This document shows, in pieces, positions 6,155-64,000 of a DNA stretch of 64,000 nucleotides (its first letter is position 1; every line of letters starts with the position of its first letter). Both the position numbers and the translations under genes were made by a program. The notes beneath the pieces were generated by a model. The model was not told the DNA's origin. It was given only the letters and a program-made list of their open reading frames with translations, and ran no database searches. Source of the stretch: Lepidodermella squamata (taxonomy: Eukaryota; Animalia; Gastrotricha); the NCBI GenBank assembly GCA_047495785.1, contig JBLDXI010000049.1:62001-126000 (forward strand), written 5' to 3'.

Positions 6155-9100
6155 ATGCCGAAAACTTACACAGAGCAACAAAAAAACGAGCGCGTCGAAT
6201 ATTGCCGGGTATAATTTTTTGCATGGTTTAAAATTAATCCTGATTTCAATTGTTAACTTTAGGTTTGCAGCAAAGTTGTTCAGCGTCGAAAGTTGTACCA
6301 TCCTAAAATATGCCGAGCTTGCGAGGTCGGTCATTCACTAAAACTTCGGTTTTGTTTTTATCAAGTTGGATTTTTTAGAAATTTTTTACGCGAAAAGCTA
6401 TTTTTCGAGATGATCTGAAATGCATCGGCGGTTCTTTGGCCTGTCGGATAGATTCAAGCAACCGAAGGTCATGCCCGCGATGCCGCATTGAGAAATGTGT
6501 AGCTGCTGGGATGCAAGGTACGTGATAACAATTTCAAAAATTTCAAAAAATTATTAAGTACCGTGGCGTGGGGCCGTGAAAGTCGCATTCTGGCCGATTT
6601 CACATGGAGAACAAAATTTCCACGGAATTTTTTTCATAGGAACATTCCTTGCCACCTGAGCTACAACTTAATTTTTACCGAATTCGGAAATCGTTTTTAA
6701 ATAACAAGAAAGGTCATTTTAGGCGCTGAGATTTTTAGCATTGTTGGCTGGAATTCTGGAATCGGAGGAAAACACCTTTTTCGCCTAATGACACCACTGG
6801 GTGATACCTTTCGAATGACACACTCGGAAAACTGATGTCGCAATCGCGAGCAGTAATTACCTGAATTTTGTGGGGTAACTTGGCCGAAAGGACAAGGGAT
6901 GGAAAATCGGCTTAAAAGATAATGAAATGAAAAAAATCTCATCATTTAGAGCTTTTCATTCTGAATCTATTAGTCCATTGCAACTATCGCGTAAAAGCTA
7001 CGCAGAATGATCTGTGAGCGTGTAAAGATGCAACTATTTTGACAACTTGGCGCAGCAAAAGGTGATGATTTGGGTTGCGATAAACATGTAGGAAAATCTT
7101 GACGAAGAAAAAATGCCTTCACATAAAAAAATTTAAATTTTATTAATAAATTAAATTAAATTATATATCATTTTTTAAAATGCACGAGATTTTATTTGTC
7201 AAATTTCAATGCTAAATTGAGGGTGGGTAGGCCGTCTACTTTTGAGGTTTTTTTACTTTCTGCAGTGATGTCAGTTGCTCTCCTGTCTAGAGACAAATTT
7301 CCTTACCGGCAATTTTTCGCCTATGGGGTTTCCTCCTTTGAACCAGCTTAATCTTAGCGTTAAACTGATTTGTCTTGTATTTATTTTGACGTGTCAAAAG
7401 TCGTGTTTTTGACGTTTGGAGATGGTTTTTGAATTTTTCGTCATCTTCTGCAATTTTCTTCTCCCATTTGCTCTCCTCTGTTCAAGATGGCATGCCATAA
7501 CTAATTCGTAAACTACAGTTCGCGGACTATTTTCTGGATTTTTTTCTCTTTCGACCTCTCATGTCCAGGCCAAACGCCCCTTGTCCTTTGGCCTGGACAT
7601 GGATTGAGAGGGCGTGATGAATCATCGACCTAGTTTCTGCCAGATGGTTAACCTCCACAGAATCGATTGATGTTATCGGTCGTCGACCGGGTTTTCACCA
7701 ATCGATCGAGAATGGAACCGGGATTTTTACGGTATAAAATTTAAAAAGAAACAGGTTACCATAGGCGAAAAATGCCGGCCAAGTTATCTCACACCACGGT
7801 ATAGTTATTCCCGCAAGAAATAATGCATATTATAATTTGATCTCATTTTCAAACGCATGGCCGACCTTAATTTTGACCCTCATTTGCATATATGCAATGG
7901 CCTCATAATTATTAATTATTATCGAATTAATAAATTAAATTTTAATCTAAACCGACGAGACTAAGAATTTTCTGAAACAATTTAATTTAACCCTGAAATT
8001 ACCTCACCTTCAAAATATTTCCCAAAACTTTTTTCAGGCAAAAAAAGCGACAAATCTTCGAGGCAATCCGAAACAATGTCAATTGCTGAAGATTCTATCG
8101 ATTCGTATGAAAGCGTATCGAAGCCAAACAGCCCGGATTGTTCCAACACTGCTGTCGCTTTGCCCCGAGAACCAGCCATTTTCGACGGCGCTGCGATAGA
8201 AGACGTTATTCGAAAATCAATCTACTCACTTACTCTGCTTCACGACCTTGAGCACGTATAATTTTTCAATTTTTTTTATTTCGCTTGAATAATTATTGGA
8301 ATGTTTTAATAGTTGCCGATGCGGACGTATGATCGGACGGTTTTCGATGGCGAAAATTTCCTCCGGCTGATTGTGGAGCAGTTGGAAGGTGCTACAAATA
8401 TTGGCTGGAATTACGCTAACTTCATGAGAGGTTGTTTATTTTTCTCTTCTCGAGATTTGTTTTTTCAATTTTTGTCGATAAAAAAGACAATTTCGGAGTT
8501 TGCGAAACGTCCCTTGCCGCAATGCTGTCGTCTTCTTGGAAGCAAATCATCGGAATAGCTAGTTCCCTTATCGACAGTTCATCTGGCGCGTTTTTCGTTC
8601 GAGATTCAATTCTGCCCAGCTTCCTTGCAGCTTTCCCTGAACAACAGGTTTGAAAATCAATGCTTATGAGATCCACTGTATATGATAAAAGTTCGATAGA
8701 GTAGCTTGTTCAAGGCTTTATCCCATAATAGAAGTTGGCTTCCCGATCTGACTCTTGAACGAGTACGGTGCGTTCTGGTTGTAGTACTCGCGCTGAATTT
8801 AGCCCCGGACAAATTAAAAAAAATAGCCTAATTTTATGACCACTCACTTCTTGTATTTTCTTCACTCTCTTTGGAGAAAATTAACGTCACAGGGCTATAG
8901 AAATCGAACCCAGGTCTCAACCGATCCTGATCACACATATTATTGCGAGAGATAAGTTAGCATCGGGGATTTTGGTATTTATACTCGAAGCGTCACTGAA
9001 GTTCTAAAACGTCCTGTCGTTGAATAAACGTTGAATACCGTTGAATAAAATAAGGTCCCATTTTAAAAATAAAGCAAAATTTTACTATTTTTGTGCGATT

Positions 9101-10001
9101 TTGTTTTGTTTTTTATCGATACTGATGCCCTCCCTGAACCTGGGATTTTTTATTCTAGCTACAAGGTGCCCTAAGCTAATGGAGAATAATTATCGATATT
9201 GGGTTCCAAGGTGGTTGATAACGGAAAAATACTTGAAGAATCACTGATAGCGCAGGACATCTGTCGCTTAGGCATGATAAATAAACTTGAAATTGCAGTT
9301 AAACTCGAAAAATCATAGGCAGGTGAAAAAACCAGTCTCAAATTTAGTGCTGGCAATTTCCATTATTTTTATCACATTTTGGAGGTTTCGACCTAGATTG
9401 ATTGATCACCATACGTATTTGAATATTTAACGGATGCACGCTGCGAATAATTTTCTAAATAAAGCAAAAAATTACTGATGGTTGATTCTAGAAAATAATC
9501 GATACTCGTACTTAATTCATATTTTTAATACAGGGAACCTGGAGATTGGGCGAGGAGCTAGCTTCATGCCTCAGGGACGAATGGCAGCCTTCAATTGTCG
9601 AACTTTCCCTCCTGCTCAATATTTTATTTTTCCACGGTAATAGTAATTAAAAACATTCAATTAAAAAAAAAACGAAAAAATATTTTACACAAGGCGCTCA
9701 TGGCTTGAACGATCCTCGAGTCGAACACACGAAACAATTATTGAAAGCCGCTTTCAACATGTACGTATCTCGGCAATCGCGGCGATCCGTCGAGGACACG
9801 CAGTACTACCTGCGGCGGACCGTTAATCTAGCCGATCGGGTCGTGGCGAGTTTCCAAAAAGCCGGTGAGCAAATCAACCGCCGAGTTTTCCCGTCGTACA
9901 ACGCCGAAGAAAAGTCGCTCATAACGCAATTCATGTTTCAAGGGGCGTTAACCGCCCCCGACGCTGTGCCAATGTTACAGCAATCGCCCGATTTCGCGTG
10001 A
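6155..10001 (+). CDS. Divergent nuclear receptor NR-a (C4 zinc-finger DBD + divergent LBD-like region)
   Basis: Spliced MPKTYTEQQKNERVEYCR|VCSKVVQRRKLYHPKICRACE|KFFTRK...CIGGSLACRIDSSNRRSCPRCRIEKCVAAGM. Downstream exons REPAIFDGAAIEDVIRKSI, WQPSIVELSLLLNILFF and DPRVEHTKQLLKAAFNMY are shared with paralogues. Long introns at about 6518-8038 and 8649-9532. Confidence 0.85.
7560..7601. repeat. Short perfect hairpin in an NR-a intron
   Basis: catgtccaggccaaa ... tttggcctggacatg (15-bp arms). Confidence 0.6.
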
Positions 10002-12192: not shown

Positions 12193-12462
12193 TTTTCAAT
12201 GTGAGAAATGTCTGATTTGAGGTGTAAAAATAATTCCCTTTTTACGGCACAGCTGAAATAAATATAACTTGAAAATAAATTGATTCTTGCCGAAGGATTA
12301 ATTATTGTCGAATATAGGTCATCTTATCGCAGGAGGAATAATATGGGCGAGTGGGTATTACCTGGACGAAGATTTGCAATTTCCATATCGATTCAATGCG
12401 GTTCCCCGACATTCGCTGCGTACCAGAAAAAAGACTGCGAGAAAAAGGATAAATAATATATT

Positions 12463-19268: not shown

Positions 19269-20572
19269 ATGATGAAGGCTATATTCTGCAAGGTAGGACA
19301 GGCTTTTGTCTTAACCCCGATTTTATGTACTGTTTTTTGCATTAAGGTGTGCCAAGAGCCGGTCCCGCGACGCAAAAGATTCCACCCTTCAATTTGCGAG
19401 GCTTGCCGCAAATTTTTCAGCCGAACTTGCCAACGCGGGATTGACTGCCTGAAATGCACGTCTGAGAACTCGCCCGGGCAGTGCCATGACTTCAAAAAGC
19501 GAAACTACTGCCCGAAATGCCGCTTCGAGCGATGTTTATCCGCGGGTATGCAATGCAAGCATTTGAAGAGTCAGGGAAGTTTTTCAAGCGTGGAGGCCGC
19601 TTCACCGAAAGAAGGAAATTCAAACGGCTCGCCAATGTCGAAAACGCTGCTGGAAGAAGGCGCTGAAAACAAAATGTCACCGCCAAGTGAAGACGGAGCA
19701 GCTTTTAATTTAAAGGCAATGTCAGCAATGCTCACGCAGCCAACCCTTTTCGACGGCGATATGATAGAGGATCTCGTTCGTAACTCAATCAGCGCATTCA
19801 CTTATCTCCATAATCTTGAATTCGTGAGGATTGCTAGTTTATAAAACCATGCCGTGATTTTTCCTTTGTTTTAGCTTGTTTTGAAACGGAACCCGAAACC
19901 TTTAGCTGATTTGGAAGCTTTTCGTGAAATGTCGGCTCTACACGCTCATGGAATGATAGCTGTTGTTAATGAGTATGGACAACAATTCAAGGACGATTAT
20001 GGCTTTTTGCCAGAACATCACGTTATGGCTCTCAGTACAGCTTCGTTTGCAGCGATAAATACTGTTTTCCCTTCAACGGCCGGATCTCAGGCGTCAGCTT
20101 TCATCGGCTTGAGCGAGGAGTCTCGCGCTAAGGTCCTAGAGTGGTTCCCTGAGTTTCGAATCACGGATGATTTATGCCATCAACTGGCTCATTTGTTTTC
20201 AATTTGGAAGCCATCGTTACCGGAATGCTGCATTTTTATGGCAGTTTTGTACTTTACAGGTTATTTTCTTGAAAAATAGCCTAATTTTGCCTAATCTTCG
20301 ACTTTTGCGTAGGGAGAACGGGCAGCGATCGTTTTGAGCGGTTCTGTGACAGGCTCAAGCTGGCATTTAGCCTGTATACGTCCACGATGACAAGCGGAAA
20401 TCTTGCGCTGATTGATCAGCGTTGGCGTTATTTTAGCTTGGCGCTGCAGTTGGCGAGACAGGTGGCACTGCAGACGCAACAAGGTGTGACACAGCTGTCG
20501 CGGGAGACTCCGATATTCGCTCAAATTAAACGGATTCTCAATCAGGACCTTGAATGCGAGGAGGGTGTCTGA
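19269..20572 (+). CDS. Divergent nuclear receptor NR-b
   Basis: MMKAIFCK|VCQEPVPRRKRFHPSICEACRKFFSR...CPKCRFERCLSAGM (intron 19293-19346), then QPTLFDGDMIEDLVRNSI and WKPSLPECCIFMAVLYF. Confidence 0.85.
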
Positions 20573-21344
20573 GTTCACTAATCGATTGAGAAGTAAATAA
20601 ACTGATCAGCGGAATTTCTGACAAAACTAGCCGTATCTCTTTTTACAATCCCTGACAAGTCGCTAAAAGTTAAAAAATGAGTAAAATGAGTTGCTAAAGA
20701 TATAACTCCAAAATCCAGCTGAATCTGATTATGAAGATAGTGAAATCTAGACTGCGGGTTGAAATTTATGTGAAAGGTATCAGAAATGTTGAGATCACCG
20801 CAGTAGCAGTCTGATCTATCTGAAAGACATCTAACCGTGAAGACACCAGGCAACTGCTGTCATTATGCCGCATGTTGGTATGTTGAAGCTGTTTGCAGAT
20901 GGTGAATTTGAATGCAAAGAACAAGAAAGGGCATCATCACTTCGCTGCCTATTCTCGAGCTTTTTGCAACTGCTTAACGCATTCCGAATAAAGTACTTCA
21001 AACATTGCCAGATATTCTCGAATCGAATCATGATTTAGGTTAAAGCAAACTTTTTCGAAGTTGCTTGAACTATCGGGAAGTCTTTTCCAATATACTTACT
21101 ACACTTGTGCTTGTCCGCATCTGAACTGCGTAAATATCAACCTCTCATTTCAAAGATATAAACAATAAAGGACAGCATTGTTGATGTTGTTTTCTCCTCA
21201 AAGTATTAGTTCTAATTGCGGATATTATAGCAATTGTTTACGCGTAAGATGAAGGCTATTACTGATCTATAAAGAAGTAAACAAATCTAACAACGGACTG
21301 ATTGCAGGCTATCCTTGCCTCTCCTGCATGACATTTCGTCGGGA

Positions 21345-24052
21345 ATGGCTTCTGATCCCGAAAATCTCATAACTGCTGTCAAAGTTGGCCTTTTGAGGCG
21401 GACGATCGACAAAGTTAAACTTTTCCCTCGTTTGCAAATTGCCGCATTAAAAAGGTTTATTTGGCATTTTCATCAGTTTTCTTTGAATTTTCTCCTGTTT
21501 AGAGCCTCGCTCGATGCCGCGAAGAGACTTCACAAATGGCCGCAAGAAGTTGCTATCAATATTCACCGGTTTGAGGAAAAATTGAGGAATTTTATTCATG
21601 TCAACAAATTTGCTAACAGATTCGTATTCGAAGCGACTTTGGATCAAGATACTCCTATTTACTACTACTGGCTAGTTGCTACATCAATCGCATTCTGCTA
21701 CAACCTTATTTTCACCCCACTTCGAGCGTCATTTGTTGATTTCAACATGGATCACATAAAAATTGTTTGTTTTCACGGCTGTGAACTGCTTCTATTCATA
21801 AATTATTTTAATTTCAGTGGCTGCCGATTGATTACGCTTGCGACGCTGTTTACCTCATCGACATGCTCTTGCGATCGAGAAAGCGCTACTATCAACAAGG
21901 CTTACAAGTCTATGACTTGAAGCTACTGCGGAGACGGTATTTTCGAAGTTGGGAGTTCGTTATCGACGTAATTAGCATTCTACCAACCGATCTCATCTAC
22001 ATCCCATTCGGGCTTGAATACGTCATCTGTAGGATGAACCGGCTCTTCAAAGTCAGTCGTTTTTCTGAAATGAACGATCGTGTCGAGTCAACAGCTGCTT
22101 TTCCCAACGCCTTTAGATTCTGGTTAGAGACGGTTGAAAAGCTTAAAGTTGAAAGCATTGTCCTTCGATTTATTTTGAAGGAACACAGTATTCTACACTC
22201 TGATATGCATCCTCTATTCGACGGTCTTTTATCACTCATATTCCAAGGCGTTAGGCTGGGGCAAATCACCTGAAGACTTTCCACTAGCGAAGGAATATTC
22301 TGAACTCCCATTCTACAACCGGTATTGAAATGCATTCAAATAATATGGCATGAATCATATTATTGTTTTATGTATCAGCTTTGTGAAATGTCTCTTTTGG
22401 GGAGCGATGATGATCACTTTCATTGGCGAACAGCCGATGCCTCAAACCCCTGTTCAATACATCATCGAAGTGCTCATCTACATTCTTGGTCTATCTCTTT
22501 TCGGATTTATTGGTAAGGCAGAACGTAGATGAGTAGCAGTTAATTAATTGCCTGGTGCTTAGTCGGCAGAATTGGCGAAATAATTGATAATTTGAGCGTT
22601 AACGAAGACGCATTCAACCGCCAGCTGGACGATGTTCGTGATTACATGCAAAATTCACATGTTCCAAAAGATTGTTACACAAAGGTATGGCAATTAACTC
22701 ATAATTAATATATTATTTTTTTTACGAATTTCATTCCCGAAGGTCGTGAATTGGTTTTGCTATGCCTATGAAAACAACGTTCTTGGAACTGCTAACAAGG
22801 CCCTGAAACCACTTCCAGATCGTTTGAAAGCTGGTGAGTTAGCCTGAAATCCCACCATTAAGATGATATGCTGTCTTTATCGCAGAAATCGCAAAGGACT
22901 TGCACCTTGAATCATTGAAAAAAGTTGCTCTCTTCGCCGACTTGGATAACACTCTTCTAATTGAGCTGGTGGGCCGCCTTAAACTTCAAGTCTTCAGCCC
23001 ACAAGATTACGTCTGCAAGAAAGGTAAAGAGTCTAGTAAATCCACTGAAGGATTTACTATTCTTTGCTTTTTACAGGCGACATTGGGAAGGAGATGTACA
23101 TAGTGAAATTAGGATCTCTCGAGGTTGTTTCAGATGACGGGAAGAAGGTTTTTGTAACCCTCGGGCAAGGCGTTGTGTTCGGCGAGATCAGCCTGCTGAG
23201 CATTCCTGGGAGCAGGACAGGAAATAGACGAACGGCCAATGTTCGAAGCAAAGGTGAGGTCATTCAATTCATCCGATCTTCTTCTAATTTTTCTCATGAA
23301 GGGTACTCAAATTTGTTTTCTTTATCGAAAGAGGACCTATACGACGTACTTGAGGATTATCCAGGTGCAATGCAAAAACTGGTTGATAAGGGTAAACAAG
23401 TTCCTCAGTTACTGATAGCCTTGAGATAATCCGGATGATAGGTACTGAGATTCTTCGAAAGGAAAATAAGCTGGACGAAGAGGCTATTGTGAGGAAAGAC
23501 GCGGAGGAGGCGGCATTTAAAGCTCTCGTCGACCGGCTGACCAAATCGATTGAAAGGACGGAGGATTCTATTGCTTATCTGACTGCGACGATGCGATACA
23601 ATCGCGAAATGGCTTATAAGAGAGTTGAAAGGCTCGAGATTTTAATGAAAAAGAGATCGCTACTTCCAAGTGACGAGAGCGAAGAGGCTGGACCCTCAAT
23701 TCAAGATGAAATGAGTGACGAAACTCGAGACAAAGCGCCAGAAGAACCTCTCGCTGAGAATCCCACAGTGGAGCAAGATATAATCGTCGAAAAGCAGGAT
23801 GAAGATGAAAAAGACCAGGCGAAAGAAGTTGCTGTAGATACCGAACCTAGTAAGAGGAAAAAAGTGAGATTTGTTGACGAGGTTCCAATGGGAGAATTTG
23901 TAGAGACGCCAAATGTTCCGACGCCTGATACTCCCAAGACTCCGAATCTGCCATCTTCTGAATGTTCGACTTCACCTTCTATTCCTTCACCAGGGCCTAG
24001 TGTTTCACCTCCAGTCTACAATTTGCCACGAAAGTGGGATAAACTGAATTGA
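21345..24052 (+). CDS. Cyclic-nucleotide-gated channel alpha-like subunit 1
   Basis: S1 YYYWL..YN..PLRASF, S3 [11 protein letters not shown]4 [10 protein letters not shown], pore [16 protein letters not shown]-linker, [48 protein letters not shown], coiled coil, acidic/Pro-rich tail. Confidence 0.92.
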
Positions 24053-28737: not shown

Positions 28738-30103
28738 TCAACACCGCGAGTTATACAATTTTTCTCCGTGAGTCATTCGCGCATTCACCCAAATATCGTC
28801 AACCACCAGTCTTAGATTATCTCTGATTGAAACAACTCCCGCGTTGTCTGTGTACACAGAGACGAATCGCTTTATGCTGTCGGCCAATCGAGCCGAGACA
28901 GCGCTTGATTTCTTCATGAGCGCGACAGAATTCTGCGGCCCATGCTTGCCTTCAACCGAGGCGACGATTTTAAGAGCAGTTATGTAAAGTCGACGCAGCT
29001 TGTACAGTTGCGGGAACTGCTTGCAAACATTCACTGAAATTAATTCAAACTCTAAGTTCAATCAATGGCTTAAAAAGAACAAACCCTTGAAAAGTAGCAG
29101 GGTGAAGAAAATTGAAGCTTGCATAAGTGAAGGCTGCCAATGCTCTAGAACTTCAGCAAGTTCAGCAGCTGAATCAGCTGAGTTCTGGCGGGTTAGAGTT
29201 CTTCATTTAAGCACGAAAAAACATAATTATATTAATCCTAACCCGAAATTCAGGATAATCTTTAAGTAGCCATTTAGTAACATCACTGCTCATGCTCAGC
29301 TTCGAAGTGGCGTTGCCGGGTAGACATGACATCGAAGATCCTATCGCTGGCCAACCGCTTACAAAAGCCAACTGGATTTCCCGGTTTCTCAGACCGAATT
29401 TTTCTGAGTAAGTAACGATATTAGTAAATATTTCATTCCTTACAATGATAGCGCCTTAAACCTTTCAAAAAACATGCGTAACTCCAGCCGATTTTCATAC
29501 TTTGCTGAATATGGGTTTGCAATAGCTCGCGATGCTTTTCCAGGTTGAAATGACCCGTAAACATTTTCAGCGGTAGCTATGGGATAATTAATATAACATA
29601 AGACCCATTGCTTTCTCAAGCCTCACTGATTCCATGCCATGAAGTAATGTGAAAGCTAAAATCGAATTTTTAACGGCGTCTTCAATCGCTGCTGCGTTGA
29701 TCATACGGGGCTCTCTCGCCATAACCAGTTTCTTGTTAATGCATTTTCGCTTACCGGCTATAAAAATGCTGACATGTTCGATGAATGTCTAGAACAAAGA
29801 ATAGCATAGCTTACACTTCATGCCGGCTTCGAAGCATTTCTCAAGGCGACATTTCGTGCAGTTCGCGCGGGAATTCCCGATAATGGAGCAAGGCGGTTTC
29901 TCTGCGACACATATCAGCGAGTTTCGTTTAGGGTGGTTGCGGTAAAAGAATTTTTTGCAAGCGTGGCAAGTCCTGGGTTGGTATTCTTTTCGTGGGAGAA
30001 CTTTTAAAGTACATATCTGCAAAAATATGATGATATCAATCCTTTTCCTTAAGTTTTAACGCACCTGACAGAATACAAGCTCGTCTTGCTCCATGCTAAC
30101 CAT
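28738..30103 (-). CDS. Divergent nuclear receptor NR-c
   Basis: MVSMEQDELVFCQ|ICTLKVLPRKEYQPRTCHACKKFFYR..CTKCRLEKCFEAGMK|..REPRMINAAAIEDAVKNSI..|WQPSLMQASIFF.. Confidence 0.85.
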
Positions 30104-32318: not shown

Positions 32319-33460
32319 TCAGCAACCTGAGGTGGGGAATTTTTCTTTGTCAGTCACTCGCGGATTCAACCAAATCTCGTCAACCACCAGTCTTAGATTA
32401 TTCCTGATTGTAACAACCCCGGCGTTATCAGTGTTCTTAGTGACAAAACACTTAATGCTGTCGGCCAATCGAACTGAGACAGCGCTTGATTTCTTCATGA
32501 GCGCGACAGAATTCTGCGGCCCATGCTTGCCTTCAACCGAGGCGACGATTTTAAGAGCAGTTATGTAAAGTCGACGTAGCTTGTACAGTTGCGGGAACCG
32601 CTTGCAAACATTCACTGAGATGAATATAAGCTTGAATCTCAAAATTCAATCACAGAATTAACAAACCTTTGAAAAGTAGCAAGGTGATGAAAATTGAGGC
32701 CTGTAAAAGTGAAGGATTCCATTGCTCTAAAACTTCAGCAAGTTCGGCAGCTGAATACACTGATTGCTGTTTGATTTGAGTTCAAATATGCACAAAAGAA
32801 TATCGATTAATCTCAACCTTAAATTCAGGATAGTCTTTCACCAGCCATTGTTCGACATCATTGCTCAGGTGTAGCTTCGAAGTGGCGTTGCCAGGTAGAC
32901 ATGATAATGAAGATCCTATGGCAAGCCAACCCGTTGCAAAAAGCCGCTTGGGTTTCCCGGTTACTCAGACCGAATTTTTCTGTATATCTAAAGTAAATAA
33001 CTTAACAATATATTGGAGATCCTAAACCTTTGAAACAGCATGCGTAACTCAATCCGATTCTCAAACTTTGGTTAAGATGAGCTTCCAATAGATCACGATG
33101 TTTCTCCAAGTTGAAATGACTAGAAAAAATGTTCGATTACTGACTAGAAAAAATAAACATTGCTTACACTTCATGCCGGCTTTGAAGCATTTCTCAAGGC
33201 GACATCTCGTGCAGTTCGCCCGGGAATTCCCGATAATGGAGCACGGCGGCATTTTTGAGACACATTGCAGCGAGTACCGTTTAGGGTGGTTGCGGTAAAA
33301 GAATTTCTTGCAAGCATGGCAAGTCCTGGGTTGGTATTCTTTCCGTGGGAGAACTGTTAGAGAACAAACCTGCTCAAAAATAGGATAGCAATCGTTTTAT
33401 TTCGCGGAAATTATAACACACCTGACAGAATACCAGCTCCTCTGGTTCCATGCTAATCAT
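32319..33460 (-). pseudogene. Nuclear receptor NR-d, duplicate of NR-c lacking the hinge exon (DBD-only product or pseudogene)
   Basis: The DBD is intact (CHACKKFF). The REPRM..HGMES exon and the start of the next exon are absent. A direct repeat tgactagaaaaaat lies at 33117 and 33141. Available acceptors shift the frame to an early stop. Confidence 0.7.
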
Positions 33461-42367: not shown

Positions 42368-45300
42368 ATGGCGAAAATTCAACTCGCCCTCTTGTTTTTT
42401 ATTCTCAGCTTTCACTTCGCAGCAGGTAAATTTACCAATAAATTATACGCGTATTCATTACTTTTTTAATTTTTTAGGCGAGGAGTTCTCGAGTTACTGC
42501 ACCGATCATGGCCACGGTCAAAAGTTGATGACATCTTTATCCCTAAAAACAACCAACCACGGCCAGCTATTCAGCCACGATCCTCGCAATTTCACCGATT
42601 CGAAGCCATTCAAGCGTATCAAATGTGCATGGCGGCTGCTTTTCGACGATTTCATCAGCGAACTCGATGATCTTATCGCAGCTCCGAGGTCGAACGACTT
42701 ACTCGCCGAGCAGGACGCGATACAACGGTCTCAAAGGCCTAAACCCCGTTTCCGAATGGGAACCGATGGCGACGATAGCCAATCGCTGCGGCTTGAATTT
42801 CACGATTTCGACATTGCCGAGACGAAATTCGATCAAAACGACCTGGACGAGCGGAAAGTTGTTGATGATTCAGGGCGGCGATGTGAGCGTAACTGGGTCA
42901 AAATTTCCTACATTGACGGTCACGCGAATAAGCAAGAATTAGGCCAATTTTGCGGTAAGGTTTCAATACCGAATTTCTACGGCGAACCTGGCCGATCGGT
43001 TATTATCGAAGTTGAAATAAATGACGCGCCGGCTAAGCCGTTTCGCATCGATTTTCACACCGGCCGGGCGTTGGAATCGCATAACAAGCAGTGTTCCATG
43101 TCGTATTTCGCGTGTGAGAATTTTCATGACCTACTTCAACCAGGCGGGTCAAGGTGCATTCCCGACTCGTACAAATGCGACACGTTCGGCGACTGTCCGA
43201 CGCGAGATGACGAGCGCGGCTGTGTTAAAGACAAGCCAAAGCCGGAGGAAATGCCGCTGGAGGCTGGTGATATGGCTCCGATTGAGCGCGAAATTATCGA
43301 TTCTGGTTGTGGCTCGCCGCGCTATCAAACTGGGTCAAGTGGTGCGTTCGGGTCGAAAAATTACCCGAAAAAATACGACAATAATGTGCGATGTGTCTGG
43401 TACATTATGTCACCTCCTGATACGGTAATTAACTGTCTACTCGTGAATCAAATTTTATTCGGGTCTTAATTTTAGCGGAACCAAATTTGAATGTAGCGGA
43501 ACCAAATTTGCCTGTTAGCGGAACCAAATTTAGGAATTTTCGAAGAGCCTAAAGCCACTTTTTGAAGCTTTCAAGCTTGTCATGATCTATCAGCATAATT
43601 TGAAATAAATCATCATTAAATTCAGCGTAAAATTCTGTAAAAGACGCATTCTTCACTATACGATTCATGCATTGCCTCAATTTCGTAGAAAAATTCAAAA
43701 AGTCACCTTTCGCTTACCTAAAATTTGGTTCCGAAAAATGCCGATTTGGTTCCGCTTTTTGTTTATTAAAAATGTCATTTTCAAAATTATCAATTAATGG
43801 ATTTATGAAAATTTAATGAATTTGGATTTTTTTTTAATTTTTTAAAATTTAAAATAAAAAAACTCTAGAATTAGAATTCAAATTTAAATTTGGGTCCCCT
43901 ACAAAGTAGGGAAAATTTAGTAAAAGGCTTCAAAACAAAAGCTTCAAAGCACCATGACCTCAAAGCAAAATAAAAAAATTGCTTCAGAGTAAAATAATAA
44001 CATTAATTCCAAAACATGCTGATCATTGCGAAATACTTTATTTTACTTTTTTAATGGGAGTGCTTTGAAGCCATTTGGTCTGGAGAGCGCACCATTTGTT
44101 GCGTCATAATTTCTTTGAAGCCTTTTACTTCGTAGGGGACCCTTAAATTTAATTGAAAAATAATCAAATTTTTCACGATGAATTTTGATAATTTTTAGAA
44201 AATCTTGATCACCTTCAATCAAACTTTCGGCATCGAGCCATCTGAAACGCAGGGTGACTGTTCATTTGATGCGCTCAATTTCTACCCTCGCGGGGTCGAC
44301 TCAATGAAATTCGGCCAACGAGTGTGCGGAAAATCGACGCCGAAATCACTGATAATCGGCTCGTCATGGGTTATGGTTGTCTTCGAAACCGACTCATCAA
44401 CAACTATGGACGGCTTCTTCCTAAAATGGAAGTCAATAACGGCGCTTGAGGAATCTACCTTAACCGGGTCAACGAATTTGAAACCACCCGTTCCAACCCC
44501 GCCGGCTAATAGCGAAGATTCCTGCACAACTTCCACCGGAATTTCACTGAAAGACCACTCTGGCTTCATCCAATCACCAGCCTATACCATGTCCCCAACC
44601 TACCCGTCCACCTTAATGTGCCGTTGGCAGCTGTTGCCAGCTCCAAAGGCGAAGGATGATAGTTACAATTTGACGCGAATCGAATTTCGATTTCTCGATT
44701 TTTCGGTCCAAGCTTCGAAAGAATGCGCCGCTGATTTTCTGATGATTAAATACCAAGATTTGGACAACAAGCCGCAATGGGTCAGGTTTTGCAACGGCGC
44801 CAATGAACCGCCGTTCGAAGAGGCCTTCGTCATTAACACGCGAAATGGCGCCGAAATCATTTTTCGCGCCGATTCTTGGATTGAAGATCGCGGTTTTGAA
44901 TTTTCGTACAAAGCCGTATTTGCGGAGGATGAAAAATTGCCGGCACTAATTATTGGCCACGATGATGAGGTGCTTTCGCCCACGTGCGGTTTGGCGCCTA
45001 ACGCCCTGGCGCCGGCTTCTCCCGTGTTTTCTGGGTCATCGCCTTTCCTAATTGGAGGGTCCACTATTGTTGAGGTAGGTACATTTTTATTATAAATTTT
45101 AGAAATTTTTTGAAGTCCGCCTGATTTTTAGAACGGCGTTTTCCCTTGGATGGTTCACTTGATGTTTCAAAAGCAACACCGATGTGCCGGAACAATTATC
45201 AGCGACAGTGAGTTTTTGAAGTCCCATTTCGATTTTCCTTAATAGTTTGGATTATTTTAGAATGGATCCTGGCTTCGGCTCATTGTTTTCAAAATGAGTA

Positions 45301-53078: not shown

Positions 53079-54341
53079 AATGATGTGACTTCCTTTGAAA
53101 AAGGCGTTCCATCTTGGGCCTCTCCTACAACAACAACTGCGATTGGCGAGCCATCTCTGCTTCCCCAGAAAGTATTGTCGGGCGACGGTAATTTGGTGGG
53201 ATCTCCTAATCTGTCAATTGAAAACTTGATTCCGCCTTTTCCGGCCGGGAAATCGTTCCCCAAAATCACCGCAGCATTGCTTCTGGAGCTATGCCAAGAT
53301 GTATCGCCGAATCAAACAGCCCCGAGAAATTTCGAAGGTTCGGCAGTACCTATCAACATTGCGATAGCCTTCGACAAGTTGCTGCAGTTTGATAGCCGAG
53401 ATGGCAAAATCACAATGCTAACTTCCATGTTACTGCGTTGGAACATTTCGACTTGTACTCTGATTCTTGGAAATGACACAATAATTGACCAGGGAGGCGT
53501 GGAGGGCGTGTTCATTCCCGATCCAAATGAGCTCTGGATGCCCAACTACTTCTTCACCACCAGTTCTGACGATCTGTTCATGAAAAATGATGAAAATTTC
53601 GACTTGGATCTCCTTGGCGTAGTCAGTAAACTTACGCCTGTTTCATCTAAATCCAATCCACTGATTAGCTTCTACTTCATTCGAAGCGGCATTTTCTCCG
53701 CTGATTGCGACCTGGACCTAGCTAAATTCCCTTTCGACGGCCAAACCTGTGGATATTCCTTTGCTATTGAACGATCGATACAATTGCTGAATTTCAACGC
53801 AATCGACCTATTCTGTTCGAACAAGCAGTTCACGGAGTGGAATTTCGAGAAATGCTCCTGGGAAATGAAGCCGGATCGAATTAGTGGCGCCGACGTTCAA
53901 ACAGTGAAATTCAACGTATCAGTAACTCGTAGGTATGGGTTCTACGTTTTCAGTACAATGCTACCGAACACTTGCCTATCCCTTCTAATTTTGGCTACGT
54001 TTGTAATGCCACCGGATGAGCCAGATAGGCCTATGTTTTGCGTCACGATCCTGCTCGCTTTAGCTCTTGCGATGTCTGGCGTGCTTGATAACATTCCTCG
54101 GACATCGCAAAGGATTCTGTTATCTGACTACGTTTTGTTCATGACTATGGTTGCTGCGGGGGTCACGCTGTATGAACTGGTCGCTTGCTTCCTAGGCAGT
54201 AGCGAAAGTGAAACGGCTTTCTGCTCGAAAAGCTGGAAAGGCGTTTCTTACCTGCGACTTCTCGATTTGGCGTTTTTCGGAATTACTCTGCTGTCAATGA
54301 TTGCAATCTATGGATATGCATATTCCATCCTCGTTGGCTGA
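53079..54341 (+). CDS. Cys-loop ligand-gated ion channel in one intron-free exon (3' part of a probable chimeric gene)
   Basis: LWMPN; Cys-loop CDLDLAKFPFDGQTC; TEW; RRYGFYVFSTMLP; four TM helices; very short M3-M4 loop. It starts at an acceptor (aacag|, 53078) and has no ATG-initiated signal peptide. Confidence 0.9.
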   Translation, partial: NDVTSFEKGVPSWASPTTTTAIGEPSLLPQKVLSGDGNLVGSPNLSIENLIPPFPAGKSFPKITAALLLELCQDVSPNQTAPRNFEGSAVPINIAIAFDKLLQFDSRDGKITMLTSMLLRWNISTCTLILGNDTIIDQGGVEGVFIPDPNELWMPNYFFTTSSDDLFMKNDENFDLDLLGVVSKLTPVSSKSNPLISFYFIRSGIFSADCDLDLAKFPFDGQTCGYSFAIERSIQLLNFNAIDLFCSNKQFTEWNFEKCSWEMKPDRISGADVQTVKFNVSVTRRYGFYVFSTMLPNTCLSLLILATFVMPPDEPDRPMFCVTILLALALAMSGVLDNIPRTSQRILLSDYVLFMTMVAAGVTLYELVACFLGSSESETAFCSKSWKGVSYLRLLDLAFFGITLLSMIAIYGYAYSILVG

Positions 54342-55083: not shown

Positions 55084-57039
55084 ATGCCAAAGGTATTTAG
55101 CCAAGCAGAAAAGGAACAAAGAATCGTTCTTTGTGGGGTAAGGAATTACCCATATTTCGTAAATAATTACGACGTGCAATATATCATTCCCAGATTTGCG
55201 GGGTTTCAGTTCGTCGACGTAAGCGATACCACCCCAAAGTTTGCGAGGCTTGCCAGGTTTTTATTATATAAACAGATTGAACTGGAATGAACAAATTGTT
55301 TCAATTGAATTTTCAGAAATTCTTCACCCGCACCTATCATATTCAGTCTAAACTGAAATGTTCTGCACTCAATACGAAAAACGCGAACATGTGCGCCGTA
55401 TCGGCCACAAAGCGACGAGTTTGTCGAAAATGCCGCTTCGACAAGTGTATTGCTTTCGGAATGAAATGTGAGTGCATAAGAATTATGATTATGACCTAAT
55501 TTCCTTGAAAGGCGCTGGAAAACACCGCTTTATTTCGCATTTTTTTCCGTTGATTTCTCCTTTTCGAACCAAGTATTAGCAAAAATAATTCATACTATTC
55601 ATTTTGTATTTTTTTACCCCAAATTTTTATATACGCCGCCATCTAAAAATGTCGTTTAAATTTGAGTGCGTTATTTCAAAGGGCGAGCGAATATGTAGTT
55701 ACTTTGCAAGTAACCCCGAGCTAATAGAATTGCGCATCTGAAAATACATGCCTGGACGCAAAACACGATCGCGTGCCAGCCGTCTTCCAGACTGGAAAAC
55801 AACGTCTAAAGTGCCAACTTTTTTTGTCTGATTGACATGTCAAAGATTTATTGACCTAATAGCCCATCCTTATATATAATTCCACTTGCATTCTTAATCA
55901 TTTTAGCTAAAATCAGTGAACGATCGATGCAGATCACCGATTTACTTATCGGCACTACAAGTGAACCTGAGAAGTCAGGTTCTTCGTCGAATGCAAGTAC
56001 CAAGGCTGATAATCCGGATTTTGACCAAAGCCAATCTTCAATTGAGCTGTACAAAGAACCAATATTGTTCGACGGCACTGAAATCGAGGAAGTTATGCGG
56101 CACTCAATTCATGCCTTCACCTTACTGAGCGAGTTTGATTCCGTAATTTTTTCCTCTTTGATGAAAACTGTTCAGAGTTATGCTATCTAACTCTAGTTAC
56201 CTATGAAGCGTTACAAAGGCCCGGCATTAAACTTTCAATCTGCGTCTAGCCTCATGTCGGCTCAAACTATCAAATTTTTCTCAGTGACAGTAGCATACTG
56301 CAAATTTATGCAAGGTAAGAAGATTCAGCTTTGCTTTGAAGTTGACATTTTTTGCTCTCATCTTTAAGACATCTATCGGTTTAATGACGACGAATTGGAA
56401 GCTCTCACTTTCGAAGCAGCCAAGTCGCTGAAAACTGCTTACTCAGTTCTACCTGGCAATAACACTTCGTCTATTGTCGATATTGACTACAAAATATTAC
56501 CAGCTATCCTTAATTACTTCCCAGAACTAGAGGTAAGTATACTTTTTTCTTAAATTGCATTCAAACATTGGCGAATTTTCCAGGAAACTGTCGAAGCTTC
56601 AAAGGATTGTTCTTCGGTCTTTGGAGATTGGAATCCATCTCTCGTTGAATCTGCCCTTTTCTTCAGCTTACTGTTCTTCCACGGTAAGAATGGACAAATA
56701 ATTAAAACACATTTCTATTTTCCATTTTATATAGATGACGTGGTGAAGAAGAATCCTCGACTCTATCGTGTGAAAGGTCTGCTCCAATCCGCGTTCAAAA
56801 TGTATTGTTCCCGCGCCGCTGATCGCCCCTACGAAAAAGCTATGGAACATCTAGTTGCATCAACGCAATCTTTATCAAATATGTGTAAAAAGCTGTGCGA
56901 TGCTGTTGAAGCCATGACAGGCCGTGATGGGTCTTTTGACAGAAGAGCCAACATGCTAATGGACCAAGCGTTCCGCACCCCACCCAGTGAAGCCCGCGTC
57001 ACATCGACGTTTACAGAACTGTGTTCTCAGGTAGATTAA
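55084..57039 (+). CDS. Divergent nuclear receptor NR-f
   Basis: MPKVFSQAEKEQRIVLCG|ICGVSVRRRKRYHPKVCEACQ|KFFTR..CRKCRFDKCIAFGMK, then KEPILFDGTEIEEVMRHSI and WNPSLVESALFF. Confidence 0.88.
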
Positions 57040-57960: not shown

Positions 57961-58444
57961 TTGGATAAGAAAAAATGAAAACTGCTATGCACTTTTCAGA
58001 TTTTAGCTAGCATATTATTTGTGTCTAGGTAATTGAGATAGGTGCATATATAGATTCATAATTAATTTATGTACTGGAAACGTCAAATGCTTCCGGTTTG
58101 GTCATTTTAAATGCCCTGTTTCGGAGGCATCCAGGCATCGTGATAAATTATGTGACTTGGCGTTAGATCAATTTTGTACGTGGTCAGCCTTGCAAAAATG
58201 TCCTTTTTACTTATATCGACTTCCGATAAACATACACGTTCATGAATGCCGCGCTGCGAGTAAGCTCAAATTAGTTAGATGTTTTTGTCAATAAAATGTC
58301 TGCGGTTCCGAATATCACTGACAGAGTCCAACCTGTCCACGCGTTGGCTGAAAGTATAACTTATCAAAACTACTTGTTAATACCAGTTGATGTGTTTGCT
58401 GTAGCTCTCAAATTATTTTTGCTATAAAAAATAGCATTCGAGAG

Positions 58445-60355
58445 ATGCCTTCACCCAAGATTTTCTCCCAAGAAGAAAAGGAGAAAAGAATCGTGCTTTG
58501 TGGGGTAAGCCATATCATCCACAACATTCATCCTAAGACATTTCATTCCCAGGTTTGCGACGTTCGCGTGCGCCGTCGTAAACGATACCATCCCAAAGTT
58601 TGCGAAGCTTGTCAGGTTAACATTTGGAAAGAAATGCAATTCGAAATTAAGCTGGTGAAATTTTTAGAAATTCTTCACCCGCAACTACCACAAGCAAACA
58701 AAGCTAAAATGTATTAGCGTCAATAGAACAGATGCGAACAATTGTGTTGTATCGGTCAACAGGCGTCGAGTTTGTCGAAAGTGCCGCTTCGATAAGTGCG
58801 TTACCTTTGGAATGAGATGTAAGTTCCCTTATTCTCGCACATTTTTGTAACCTCAACTTATTTTCTAGCTAAAATCAGTGAACGCTCGCTGCAGATAAGA
58901 GAATTTCTTGCTTGCAATTCTGACGAGTCGGATTCCTCAATGAATTCAGACTCCGCCAACACCAGCACTTCAGCGGATGCTGCGACTGTTGGCCATCAAA
59001 ATTGTTCGGTCGAGATGTACAAAGAACCGGTTCTGTATGATGGCAGAGCTATTGAGGAAGTAATTCGCCACTCCATCCATGCTTTCACTCTGCTGAGCGA
59101 GTTCGAATCCGTAAGCTACAGCAATTCATTCACGAAAAATAATCAAATGAATATTGTTATCACCAGCTTCCTTTAAAGTGTTACAAGGGCCCTGAGATGA
59201 CCTACGAACTGGCAGCTGGTCTCATGTCGGTTCAAACAGTCACATTTTTCTCGATTACGATAACATACGCCAAGTTCATGCAAGGTGCCAAAGTGGTCCT
59301 AATCTTTCGAGATAGGATGATTTATTTATTCATTTATTTAAAACTGCAGTTTCGCGTTGCGCGTGTTCACAGTCATTTGTTTTTATATACAGTTTTCAAA
59401 TATTTACAGGCGTCTCACCGTCGACACACAAGTTTTTACAATTTCAGGCAACAAGTTTTGTAAAATATTATTTTTAAAAAAAGTAATTGAACGAGAGTTA
59501 ATTATGCATTCTGGTACCTTATTCCATACTTTCTGTTAATTCTGTTGCCATTGCAAAATCTTCGGGGATCTGAGCGACATTTAGAAGGAACTATGCAGTG
59601 TTTCGCCTTTCTAGTGTTAGTTGAATTTTCGAACAAAGATGAAAAAGAGACATCAACAAAATTGTGGTGTGTGATGTGATGTATTTTCAGAATTATATCG
59701 GTTCAACGATGAGGAATTGGAAGCTCTTACATTCGAAGCAGCCAAGTCCATAAAAACAGCATACTCCATGTTGCCTGGGAACAACACATCGTCTGTTATT
59801 GATATCGACTTCAGAATTATATCAAATATCCTTACCTACTTTCCTGAATTGAAAGTGAGTATGATCCATATTACATGAACCCTGAACTAACTTCCATATT
59901 GCAGACGATCGTCGTAGCTTCGCAAGAATGTGCTTCAGTTATTGGTGATTGGAATCCATCTCTCGTCGAATCCGCCCTTTTCTTCAGTTTGCTATTCTTC
60001 CACGGTTCGACTTTCCATGAATGATATGCTTGTAACCATTCGCGTTTTTGTAGACGACGTCGTGAAGAAAAATAATCGGCTCCATCGCGTGAAAGGCCTG
60101 CTCAATGCCGCGTTCAATATGTACTGCTGCAGTATCGGCGATCGGCCCTTCGAAAAAGCTAAGCAGCACCTTGTCAATGCTACGTTTTCCATGTCGAAAA
60201 TGTGTAAAAAGCTGTATGGCGTTGTCGAAGCTATGAAGAGTCATGCTTTCGATAGCCGGGCGAACCTGCTGATGGACCAAGCGTTCCGCACGCCGCCCAG
60301 TGAAGCCCGTGTCTCCTCGACCTTTTCCGAACTATACTCCCAGCTGGATGAGTGA
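58445..60355 (+). CDS. Divergent nuclear receptor NR-g (close paralogue of NR-f)
   Basis: MPSPKIFSQEEKEKRIVLCG|VCDVRVRRRKRYHPKVCEACQ|KFFTR..CRKCRFDKCVTFGMR. The C-terminus DQAFRTPPSEARV is shared with NR-f. Confidence 0.88.
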
Positions 60356-61391: not shown

Positions 61392-62888
61392 ATGCCGCGA
61401 ACATACACGAAGGAAGAAAAGGAGAGCCGTGTCATTCACTGCCGGGTATGAACTTCACCTTAATTTTCGAGCGAAATTCATATCAATTGCCAATTCACAG
61501 ATTTGCAATGCTCTAGTCCCGCGGCGGAAGAGGTATCATCCCAAAAACTGCGAAGCTTGCCAGGTAACTTTCTAGAATTTTCTTAAGATTTTCTGTTTAT
61601 TTTACATTTTTTCAGAAATTTTTCTCTCGAAACCACAACCGGCAGTATGCGTTGAGGTGCTCTGGAGGCGACTCCAAATGTGAAATCGATTCATCGAACC
61701 GTCGAAGCTGTCCTAAATGCCGCTTCGAAAAATGTGTTCTAGCTGGAATGCGATGTGAGTCATCTCTCGAGGCTCAATAATTCTCATTTATTTTTTGACC
61801 TTCACAGCTCGACAAGGGAAGCCCTTCAAAGACGAAGAGGAAGATGTCAGCTCAGGGGAAGGCGCATCTGGCGATTCAACATCGGCCGACCAAATGCAAC
61901 TCGCAATTGTGCGACCCCGATCGAGCAGTATCAGCAGCAATAAAAGCACGGATTTTTCAATAAACGAATCCTTTGACAGTCCGTCCGCTATTTGCGAACC
62001 CCAGTTAGTTCGAGATCCAGTTCTTTATGATGGTTCGCTAATCGAAACAGCGATCAAGCAGTCAGTCATCGCTTTCACAATTCTCCATGGCTTTGAATTG
62101 GTAAGGGACCTATTTCATCAATGTCCCCAGGCTTTAATATCAATTTGCAGCTGCCGTTGAAACTGTGTACTGATTACACCATCGAGACTCATTTTGAACT
62201 TGCCGGTCAACACACTTTAGAGATGGCTAAAGTAGGGGCGGCCTACGCTGACTTCATCAAAAGTAGGCTCCTTGATCGGTGTAATGAATCGTATCTTTTT
62301 TAGACTCTCCTTTGCCAGATTCCTATCGGCTATCGGACGACGAAGGTCGCGCTCTGATGCAGTCCGGGTTCAAACCAATGATGGCTGCTTACTCGGCCCT
62401 GCCTGGTAACAACATGGCAAAATTCGATATTAACGCGTCGATTTTGGAGAGCTTTCTACGCGTTTGCCCTGAATACCAAATTTCCATCGATGCTGGATCG
62501 ATTCTTCGCGATGCTATGAATGACTGGTCGCCCAGTTTGGTCGAATGCGCTTTGTTTTTCAATCTTTTGTTCTTGGGAGGTTTGGGAATTGCTTTTGAAC
62601 AAACTGAAAATGTATGAATTAGTTACAGGTGAAACTCAACCGATAAGCCCTCGGGCTGCTCAACTGCGCAATCTGCTTCAAACAGCTTTTCGTTTACACG
62701 CAGCCAGGCAGCCTTTCAGACCCCTGGAAGAAACCAACAAACACCTTTGCCGAAGCACAGTTCTCGCGAAGCAGAACGCGGCCGCTTTACAGCGAAGTGT
62801 TGAGATCTCGGTGCGGCGAATGTTCACGAGATTTAACCCGAGTGTCCAGCAAACTGTCAGTGATATATTTTTCAATGGCACAAGTTAG
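61392..62888 (+). CDS. Divergent nuclear receptor NR-h
   Basis: MPRTYTKEEKESRVIHCR|ICNALVPRRKRYHPKNCEACQ|KFFSR..CPKCRFEKCVLAGMR, then RDPVLYDGSLIETAIKQSV and WSPSLVECALFFNLLFL. Confidence 0.88.
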
Positions 62889-63506
62889 TTGAACAATTTA
62901 TCGTATCATATATCCTCATGTTGTCTATTTTCGTCTCATTAAATGAACATTAAAACAAACTTTGTCGGTGAGATCATATTGATGTTGCTTCAAGTCCGTG
63001 CTCTTTGATCATAATCTTGAGATTGCGGTATTGAAGGCGTGGACGTTATCAGTTGAGTACAGCTCTATTTTAGCCAGAGAGAGCTTGCAGAGCTTTGAAA
63101 AGTCCAATCGCAAAAGTATAACATCAACGGAATGACACGTGAGCTGCTTAACAAAAATTAGTTTATCTCGAATTTCCATTTCCACGTCCCAGAGATGTCC
63201 ATATCATCTCCCATCTCGCAAACTAAAGTTCATCACTTGCGTCAAGTCCGGTTTCTTTTTATTGTCGGTGACTATAAGTTTTTTCGATGCCTGTTTGTCG
63301 CTGTATGCCCCCTGCACAGGACAAGTTCTCGCGATCGATAACATCGTGCTGATCGATACGACACTGCTCGTCTACGCCGCAATTTTTTTCTATTTTTACT
63401 ACACCCGCTGTTGAGTACTTGTTAGCTTGCTATACATAATAATTTTTCCTACTTTTCATCTAGTTTTCTTTTACGACAATGCCTATGATCTTCGCACTTT
63501 GATAGG

Positions 63507-64000
63507 ATGCCCCAATATATTACAAAGGAGGAGAAGGAGCATAGGACCGTTTTTTGCAAGGTATTGTTGACAATTGATGATGTATCTGAGGTCTATTTGC
63601 TTTAATTGATACAACAGGTTTGCAAGATCCTAGTCCCCCGTCGCAAGCGTTACCATCCAAAAGTTTGCGAAGCTTGCCAGGTAATTCTATAGCAAATAGC
63701 TGATAATTCCTAATTATTTTGTTTACCAATCAGAAATTCTTCAGTCGAAATTTCGATAGATACCAAAAGTTGTTATGCACTGGAAATGGCAACTGCCCGT
63801 TAGACTCATCTGGTGATCGTCGCACGTGTGCGAGATGCCGATTCGAGAAATGTCTCCAGGCAGGGATGAAAAGTGAGGGTTGCCAATTGTCAACCCAAAT
63901 TAGTAATATCTTGAATTTATAGCGAGACGTTTATCTCTGACGCATGTCAAGTCCGAGTTCTCCGACGATAACATTGACCAGCACACCACGGCGGATCCAG
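63507..64000 (+). CDS. Divergent nuclear receptor NR-i (3'-truncated by the window)
   Basis: MPQYITKEEKEHRTVFCK|VCKILVPRRKRYHPKVCEACQ|KFFSR..CARCRFEKCLQAGMK. Confidence 0.85.

Follow-up and report, generated by a model that had tools for sequence, protein, structure and literature searches.

An array of atypical nuclear receptor genes with a remodeled first zinc finger and a highly divergent ligand-binding domain in Lepidodermella squamata

The 64,000-nucleotide stretch of DNA analyzed here (positions 62,001 to 126,000 of the forward strand of contig JBLDXI010000049.1 from Lepidodermella squamata; hereafter, the window) is eukaryotic DNA with a GC (guanine plus cytosine) content of about 0.40, and it carries a family of atypical nuclear receptor (NR) genes. 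Six-frame motif scans of the window located the P-box and first-finger loop motifs of the family at nine places, and the first finger was unreadable in any single frame. Searches of the window by tblastn with all gene models and by six-frame scans with hidden Markov model (HMM) profiles of the family DNA-binding domain (DBD) and ligand-binding domain (LBD) gave a total of nine NR loci, and no further NR locus was found outside the nine. Seven of the loci were complete (G06, G19, G30, G36, G55, G58, and G61), G63 was truncated where the window stops, and G33 was a relic. The original prediction of nine genes plus two relics therefore gave way to a count of nine loci; its placement of an NR gene cluster from position 6155 to the window end was borne out, and the genes contain introns. 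A weakly matching candidate relic at 44166-44258 (44.2 kb) was rejected, as it had no NR frame.

The complete models were 344 to 399 amino acids (aa) long and had 4 to 8 exons with conserved intron phases. G55 (55084-57039, plus strand) was built by hand, and a purpose-written protein-to-DNA spliced aligner recovered this model exactly; the other models came from the aligner and hand correction. The 396-aa protein of G55 is encoded by eight exons (55084-55137, 55194-55256, 55317-55467, 55907-56142, 56197-56314, 56369-56532, 56584-56683, and 56735-57039) separated by GT-AG introns of 51 to 60 nt and one of 439 nt. It has the P-box CEACQK, the loop ..RRRKRYHPKV, a D-box of x10, and the C-terminal sequence F-T-E-L-C, and residues 236-367 matched our custom LBD HMM. 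Three further loci on the plus strand have the same P-box: G58 (58445-60355; complete, eight exons, 399 aa), which is 68% identical to G55, G61 (61392-62888; complete, seven exons, 377 aa), and G63 (63507-64000), which is represented by its first three exons only (N-terminus and DBD, with a D-box of x5) because the remainder lies past the window end. At the other end of the window, G06 (6155-10001, plus strand; complete, 387 aa; spliced alignment and hand curation) has eight exons at 6155-6208, 6263-6325, 6379-6517, 8038-8255, 8313-8430, 8487-8647, 9534-9636, and 9694-10001. Its P-box is CRACEK, its loop is ..QRRKLYHPKI, its D-box is x6, and matches to the Pfam zf-C4 model and to the custom canonical LBD HMM were found on exon 3 and residues 211-347, respectively. 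G19 (19269-20572, plus strand; complete, 382 aa) has the P-box CEACRK and only four exons (19269-19292, 19347-19823, 19875-20259, and 20313-20572), with a zf-C4 match of 30.5 bits on exon 2.

The remaining three loci are on the minus strand. G30 (28738-30094; complete, seven exons, 344 aa) has the P-box CHACKK, the loop ..LPRKEYQPRT, a very short hinge, and a DBD exon at 29816-30016 that matched zf-C4 with 49.5 bits. G36 (35115-36491; complete, seven exons, 345 aa) has the P-box CQACMK and a zf-C4 match of 44.7 bits. The relic G33 (32322-33448) was copied recently from G30 and is decaying. Its reading frame is still open in exon 1, in the DBD exon (33169-33369), and in the last exon; it has lost the hinge/H1 exon together with the 5' half of the exon that follows, and there is a frameshift in exon 6. 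Just 3' of the G30 stop codon, the segment 28534-28656 (minus strand) gave a weak match to the family LBD HMM (10.4 bits, E value of 0.05), which could have arisen by chance or be what is left of a last exon, either an alternative one or a former one.

The DBDs had an unusual first finger. All nine copies showed the pattern C-x2-C-x14-C-x2-C and all eight zinc-binding Cys residues, and the first Cys was preceded by just 6 to 18 residues, leaving almost no N-terminal domain. The finger-1 loop (RRKRYHP, RRKLYHP, RRKRFHP, or PRKEYQP; full types V-x-R-R-K-R-Y-H-P-K-x and V-x-P-R-K-E-Y-Q-P-R-T) was strongly basic and one residue longer than the canonical loop, and it was without the HYG of the canonical G-x-HYG turn. 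The P-boxes were CEACQK in four copies, CHACKK in two, and CRACEK, CEACRK, and CQACMK in one each, followed by F-F-x-R. Thus, the first P-box residue was E, R, H, or Q among the paralogs, the residue that follows the second P-box Cys, canonically Lys, was Q, E, M, R, or K, and the first position after F-F was T, S, or Y. The D-box ranged from 5 to 11 residues: it was x5 only in G63, x6 in four further copies (and likewise, by eye, in G33), x10 in two, and x8 to x11 in G19, depending on which Cys was counted. In PMC10497141, the canonical NR DBD spacing is x13 and x5-x9, and receptors with two DBDs (2DBD-NRs) carry CEACKK as the P-box in their first DBD; the original prediction agreed with this literature on the x13 spacing and on CEACKK. 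With their x14 finger and mostly non-x5 D-box, the window copies departed from the canonical C-x2-C-x13-C-x2-C and C-x5-C-x9-C-x2-C. The x14 first finger, the basic loop instead of HYG, the CxACxK P-boxes, and the minimal N-terminus had been predicted from the start, and each was seen in every copy.

The C-x2-C of the first finger was split across exons, as the short exon 1 ended in Cys-x and was followed by a phase-0 GT-AG intron of 48 to 60 nt. This intron between Cys1-x and x-Cys2 (55138-55193 in G55) was conserved across all nine copies and might be of use in marking the lineage. The x14 spacing was no artefact of splice choice, because intronless homologs (e.g., P0028, described below) also had C-K-V-C followed by 14 residues.

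Profile comparisons placed the domain firmly among NR DBDs. The Pfam zf-C4 model (PF00105) was called on every DBD exon tested, with scores of 30.5 to 49.5 bits against a cut-off of 21.1, and the match began only past the finger-1 loop. The family DBD profile aligned over its full length with 88 solved NR DBDs, leaving a single gap in the loop. The best scores were obtained with NR5A2, SF-1, ERR, HNF4, and NR2C2 (51 to 56 bits), and the rest scored 44 to 50 bits; the DBD therefore belongs to the NR superfamily and to no particular solved subfamily. The NR5A (LRH-1 and SF-1) and ERR domains, which scored 52 to 56 bits, shared a well conserved second finger and GM region with the family. However, they have an x13 loop with HYG, the P-box ESCKG or EACKA, and an x5 D-box, and their lead over other subfamilies was a few bits. 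In the HMMER alignment to NR5A2, the Gln of C-E-A-C-Q-K fell on the Lys of C-E-S-C-K-G, and the next Lys fell on the Gly.

The C-terminal half contained the private motifs EPxxFDGxxIE..S..AFTLL, LPGN, FPEF, and WxPSLxE..FF. Private C-terminal motifs had been noted originally, and we found them in the window copies and in the homologs outside of the window as well. Both a DBD and an LBD were found in all seven complete models, unlike the one-domain receptors of NR0. When 13 full-length family LBDs, which included 7 spliced window models, were compared with 35 canonical LBDs from the retrieved proteins using hhalign, the two sets aligned with a probability of 94.8% and an E value of 5e-8 over 169 columns, from about H3 to H10. 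In this alignment, the family Y..F......L...E..AL lay on the canonical FAK..PGF..L...DQ..L signature, and W.PS..E..LF..L.F lay on the canonical L.LD..E.A.L.A helix. The custom canonical LBD HMM also gave weak collinear matches of 15 to 16 bits on G55 and G06.

Structural modeling pointed the same way. The AlphaFold (AF2) target was P0163, a 255-aa LBD-only family open reading frame (ORF) from an environmental contig, which was aligned with window exons and two further homologs; the last-exon, H1, and exon-5 rows were omitted from the AlphaFold alignments. The resulting model had nine helices and a short strand pair, with a predicted local distance difference test (pLDDT) score of 76.6 and a predicted template modeling (pTM) score of 0.74. 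With this model as the Foldseek query, the 50 best PDB matches were all NR LBDs (template modeling [TM] scores of 0.50 to 0.69 over 205 to 260 columns), and the AlphaFold DB matches were likewise NR LBDs. A Foldseek-independent scan of 48,161 representative chains returned NR LBDs at ranks 1 to 36 (Z scores of 10.4 to 16.8, 171 to 223 residues aligned), with DHR38, VDR, an oyster ER, ROR, FXR, and GR among them; the next chain dropped to a Z score of 7.1. A first model, built from 15 rows, was poor (pLDDT of 54.7); it drew NR LBDs only, which offered weak support. The LBDs of DHR38, VDR, ROR, FXR, PPAR, and Nurr1, which belong to orphan or lipid-sensing receptors, had the same helical sandwich as the P0163 model over 200 to 220 residues (Z scores of 16 to 17, TM scores of up to 0.69), but sequence identity to the family was 7 to 18% and the H3-H5 signature motif of the family was degenerate. 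Since hhalign, the P0163 model with Foldseek, and the Foldseek-independent scan agreed, these lines of evidence show that the C-terminal half is a true, very divergent NR LBD. The helical sandwich on which the original prediction hinged is therefore present.

An amphipathic stretch was present at the C-terminus of all copies (F-[ST]-E-L, V-S-D-I-F, V-D-D-I-W, or L-K-E-V-Y), and the outside homologs had L-L-E-D-I and L-N-E-D-V. This stretch formed the last helix of the P0163 model, at the helix 12 position of solved LBDs, with the C-terminal ends aligned. The conserved helix with its acidic residue is a candidate activation function 2 (AF-2), which casts doubt on the earlier statement that the family has no clear AF-2. 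In NRs generally, the AF-2 of helix 12 follows the pattern hydrophobic-hydrophobic-x-E-hydrophobic-hydrophobic. A protein-atlas search with the G19 LBD exon as the query returned bacterial matches only, which we judged to be chance.

Relatives were sought with an HMM profile that spanned the DBD, hinge, and H1 and was run exhaustively against 1.84 billion representatives. Family members in this search came only from environmental assemblies (ENA and Logan). They included the full-length proteins P0028 (435 aa) and P0111 (428 aa) and several exon-sized pieces with x14 and CEACQK; blastp aligned G19 with P0028 over the full length (E value of 1.7e-44). When the full-length and LBD-only profiles were used in word-based searches, the only additions were P0163, P0173, and some fragments, none of them a named protein, and a search of JGI metagenomes with P0028 gave no match. 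Within the reach of our searches, annotated proteomes thus contain no member of the family. Other genomes do share it, because members whose finger, P-box, and LBD motifs agree with those of the window copies occurred in environmental assemblies, where they represented at least two other divergent eukaryotes. The outside genes were intronless or nearly so on their contigs and stood in tandem pairs.

Some of these contigs carried variants of the gene. P0163 (L004:297-1064) is a 255-aa LBD frame that starts from Met, has no DBD in the 296 bases upstream, and adjoins the full-length family gene P0155 (L004:1470-2756); it may be a DBD-less paralog, or its DBD exon may lie past the contig end. A second family gene was located upstream of the P0028-type gene at L001:7965-9466 and L003:4898-6240, and the order of the pair was the same on these contigs of different samples. 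This second gene consisted of two overlapping frames, one for the DBD part and one for a 196-aa LBD part, which suggests a very short intron or a frameshift. The top-scoring database proteins (P0001-P0012, P0100, P0102, and P0113) were of another type. Each had between three and seven NR DBDs, and the P-boxes were very diverse; Caenorhabditis brenneri and the oribatid mite Medioppia subpectinata were the sources of the named examples. These proteins may be genuine multi-DBD receptors, or they may be gene calls that joined neighbors within a tandem array.

For phylogenetic analysis, 256 DBDs were extracted from the window models and the fetched proteins. All of them were analyzed with FastTree and 84 with IQ-TREE, the latter over 68 columns and without curated NR1-NR6 references or HNF4. 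The window copies and environmental members formed one clade in both trees (FastTree support of 85; IQ-TREE support of 95/87, on a long stem), and the window copies were monophyletic within it (93/61 in IQ-TREE); the IQ-TREE backbone was unresolved. The family DBD HMM scored members at 75 to 111 bits and every other NR DBD tested, solved ones included, at about 60 bits or less. The clade and this gap in HMM scores set the DBDs apart from every described subfamily among the sampled groups, and they support the view that the family comprises atypical NRs outside every sampled NR group. They also divide the original idea of an independent, lineage-specific radiation: the monophyly of the window copies fits it, but the family itself predates the lineage, given the members in at least two other eukaryotes.

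The trees bear on where the family came from. One possible but unlikely origin is that the family is a branch of a wider, older x14 group of NRs, made up of C-x-S-C-R-x receptors of environmental assemblies and perhaps nematode x14 receptors, in which the extra residue was gained once. The nearest neighbors in the IQ-TREE analysis were indeed five single-DBD receptors with x14 and C-x-S-C-R/K P-boxes (P0117, P0120, P0128, P0145, and P0147; 94/81), an x14 domain of Caenorhabditis brenneri (P0113_d1) was nearby on a long branch, and x14 occurred in 32 of the 229 non-family DBDs among the hits. However, the support for this grouping was unstarred and came from 68 columns with long branches, and the query profile was itself x14, which favors such matches. 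Moreover, all other x14 loops retained G..[HNR][YF]G, and their P-boxes differed.

A second origin, raised in the original prediction, is that a two-DBD receptor (NR7) lost its second DBD and that the family derives from the first; we regard this as improbable. The P-boxes are alike (CEACQK or CHACKK, E-A-..-K in general, versus CEACKK of 2DBD-NR first DBDs), both groups have an NR-type LBD, and FastTree placed the family closer to the first than to the second DBDs. In addition, x14 occurred in a few of the 2DBD-NR first DBDs among the hits. Five two-DBD receptors from environmental or unnamed sources (P0024, P0043, P0064, P0126, and P0137) had this x14 first DBD, with CEACKK and the G-x-H-x-G loop kept; we saw no mention of such a variant in the passages of the 2DBD-NR literature consulted. 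The x14 loops of 2DBD-NRs thus retain a G-x-H-x-G that is missing from the family, whose loop is basic and without HYG and in which other residues mostly take the place of the Lys that follows the second P-box Cys. Each gene model had one DBD, not two in tandem, with the start codon 6 to 18 codons before the first Cys, and six-frame HMM scans gave no second DBD signal near the genes. The family LBD is unrecognized by Pfam, whereas 2DBD-NR LBDs are recognized. In the IQ-TREE analysis (with its unresolved backbone), first DBDs made up a starred clade of their own (96/98), to which the family did not belong. The maximum scores with the family HMM showed no preference, at 55.4 bits for first DBDs, 55.3 for second DBDs, and 55.8 for solved canonical DBDs, and the approximately unbiased (AU) test gave similar results for family plus first DBDs (P = 0.18) and family plus second DBDs (P = 0.28), neither of which was rejected. 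The proposed 2DBD-NR origin therefore received no positive support from the trees or profiles, and the argument for it is the P-box resemblance.

A third and still less probable origin is that the family belongs to a supplementary expansion derived from HNF4, comparable to the one in nematodes. The introns of about 50 nt are compatible with it, and C. elegans nuclear hormone receptors (NHRs) were among the best structural matches. C-type lectins, CUB proteins, and Cys-loop channels, which are the families that neighbor the array, are expanded in nematodes. However, the solved HNF4 DBD scored 51.4 bits with the family profile, which was within the general range and no better than other subfamilies, and the nematode-type C-R-A-C-A-A domains (P0078 and P0134) did not group with the family in the tree, which lacked an HNF4 reference. 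Past the DBD, no named nematode protein was matched, and the splice acceptors were not strongly TTTCAG. Nematode supplementary NHRs do resemble the family in their tandem, lineage-specific expansion, many non-canonical P-boxes, and fast-evolving LBDs, but they have other P-box classes, and most of those sampled were x13.

Comparisons among the window copies provided a view of their history. Paralogs were 26 to 38% identical, except for the G55/G58 pair. The ratio of nonsynonymous to synonymous substitution (dN/dS) was 0.165 for G55/G58 and 0.25 for G30/G36, with synonymous divergence (dS) at or beyond saturation, so the copies have been under purifying selection. For G33 compared with G30, dS was 0.22 to 0.26 and dN/dS was 0.30 to 0.47, and constraint was relaxed. 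Intron positions were common to the copies, with some losses: the intron after the P-box is missing from G19, G30, G33, and G36, G19 is also without the introns after the DBD and within the LBD core, and G61 is without the intron between LBD exons 6 and 7. These sequence comparisons point to an old, local expansion that selection has maintained, with occasional gene death, and not to a recent burst. That it is decaying, non-functional DNA with open frames by chance is hardly credible, for although one copy (G33) is clearly broken, seven frames of 344 to 399 codons are complete across 4 to 8 exons with conserved phases, dN/dS is 0.17 to 0.25 at saturated dS, and the eight zinc-binding Cys residues and the LBD motifs are kept among copies that are 26 to 38% identical.

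We think it likely that the loci are single-DBD NRs of a distinct, unnamed clade with a remodeled finger and a real LBD, and that they arose by old local duplications from a still older founder. Each modeled receptor consists of a minimal N-terminus, a DBD with the helix C-x-A-C-x-K-F-F-x-R, a Ser/Asp-rich hinge, and an LBD of the 12-helix type, and the members would act as sequence-specific transcription factors. In solved NR DBD-DNA complexes, base contacts are made by the P-box Glu, the Lys that comes after the second Cys, and the Lys-Arg after F-F, the His and Tyr of the finger-1 loop touch the backbone, and the D-box is the DBD dimer interface. Given the changed P-box residues, the longer basic loop, and the variable D-box, paralog-specific, non-canonical half-sites are to be expected. 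An altered DNA-recognition code is thus a reasonable inference from these sequences: the paralogs probably read distinct half-sites, and the basic loop probably adds backbone contacts. The lack of D-box conservation speaks against a DBD dimer interface of the classical kind, and the D-box would not be expected to mediate such a dimer. Because the N-terminus is so short, the LBD would be the sole activation surface. By analogy with other expanded invertebrate NR groups, it probably recruits cofactors via the helix 12 surface, either constitutively or upon binding of small lipophilic molecules. The copies would have arisen by duplication in this lineage, with a founder gene common to other, unsampled eukaryotes.

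Several points weigh against this reading. The Pfam Hormone_recep model (PF00104) had no match on the window LBD exons or full-length P0028, even at an E value of 1, and when solved structures were searched by sequence with the LBD profile, no NR was matched. When hhalign was run on an alignment of exon fragments, the probability was 5% only; stacked alignments of all LBD exons as fragments were badly misaligned, and only the run with spliced full-length sequences was informative. The modeled protein P0163 is an outside homolog that is about 25% identical to the window LBDs, not a window protein. The gene models are DNA-based predictions made by hand or by the spliced aligner, and several LBD-exon donors in G30 and G36 were non-consensus, so some exon borders may be wrong. 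Finally, we inferred DNA binding, dimerization, ligand dependence, and AF-2 function alike.

Other divergent receptors offer a useful comparison. In PMC8363021, 'divergent NRs' of Macrostomum lignano, cestodes, and molluscs are described as independent within-lineage duplications in several phyla; they resemble the family in having atypical P-boxes, no place in the NR nomenclature, and independent lineage duplications. The flatworm NR census in the same source (PMC8363021) kept only sequences with canonical x13 spacing, so x14 families would have been missed by it. The string CEACQK did not occur in any paper of the text collection searched. More tentatively, the family may be an old, unnamed NR subfamily, with three defining features: an x14 first finger whose basic loop is R-[RK]-x-[YFH]-x-P, a recognition helix of the form C-x-A-C-x-K with the canonical Lys mostly replaced, and a private LBD. 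Such a subfamily would be present in several animal lineages known only from environmental assemblies, would have been missed by censuses with an x13 filter, and would read half-sites outside the known NR repertoire.

The array was not contiguous, as it formed three sub-clusters with unrelated genes between them (C-type lectin, cyclic-nucleotide-gated [CNG] channel, CUB/LDLa, and Cys-loop channel genes). A multi-exon CNG channel gene with a cNMP-binding exon was located between G19 and G30 (21291-24049, plus strand), and its last exon carried a CLZ leucine-zipper domain (Pfam PF16526, 29.4 bits). Two long open frames with CUB and LDL-receptor class A domains were found between NR sub-clusters at 42525-45095 (plus strand). 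At 53085-54341 (plus strand), a single 418-codon open frame encoded a Cys-loop channel (Neur_chan_LBD and a transmembrane region), and the search for relatives yielded no more than two environmental proteins (41% and 31% identity), a sign of the poor sampling of this lineage. An Rfam search of the window gave no match.

The array is not a new kind of system, as nematodes, flatworms, and molluscs are well known to have NR radiations that are confined to one lineage and show odd P-boxes. What is new is a distinct NR clade with a remodeled reading head and a cryptic LBD. By analogy with nematode supplementary NHRs, its members are likely to have a diversified role as sensors or regulators. NRs are a textbook family of transcription factors with a fixed DNA-reading module, and here, the first-finger loop and key residues of the recognition helix have been rebuilt. 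The fold, the zinc ligands, and purifying selection have been retained, which makes the family a natural experiment on how much drift the module tolerates. Surveys of NRs based on x13 spacing and LBD calls based on Pfam would miss or truncate such genes, and NR counts in poorly sampled invertebrates may be too low. Because the paralogs differ at the P-box, they form a convenient series in which a new recognition code could be mapped.

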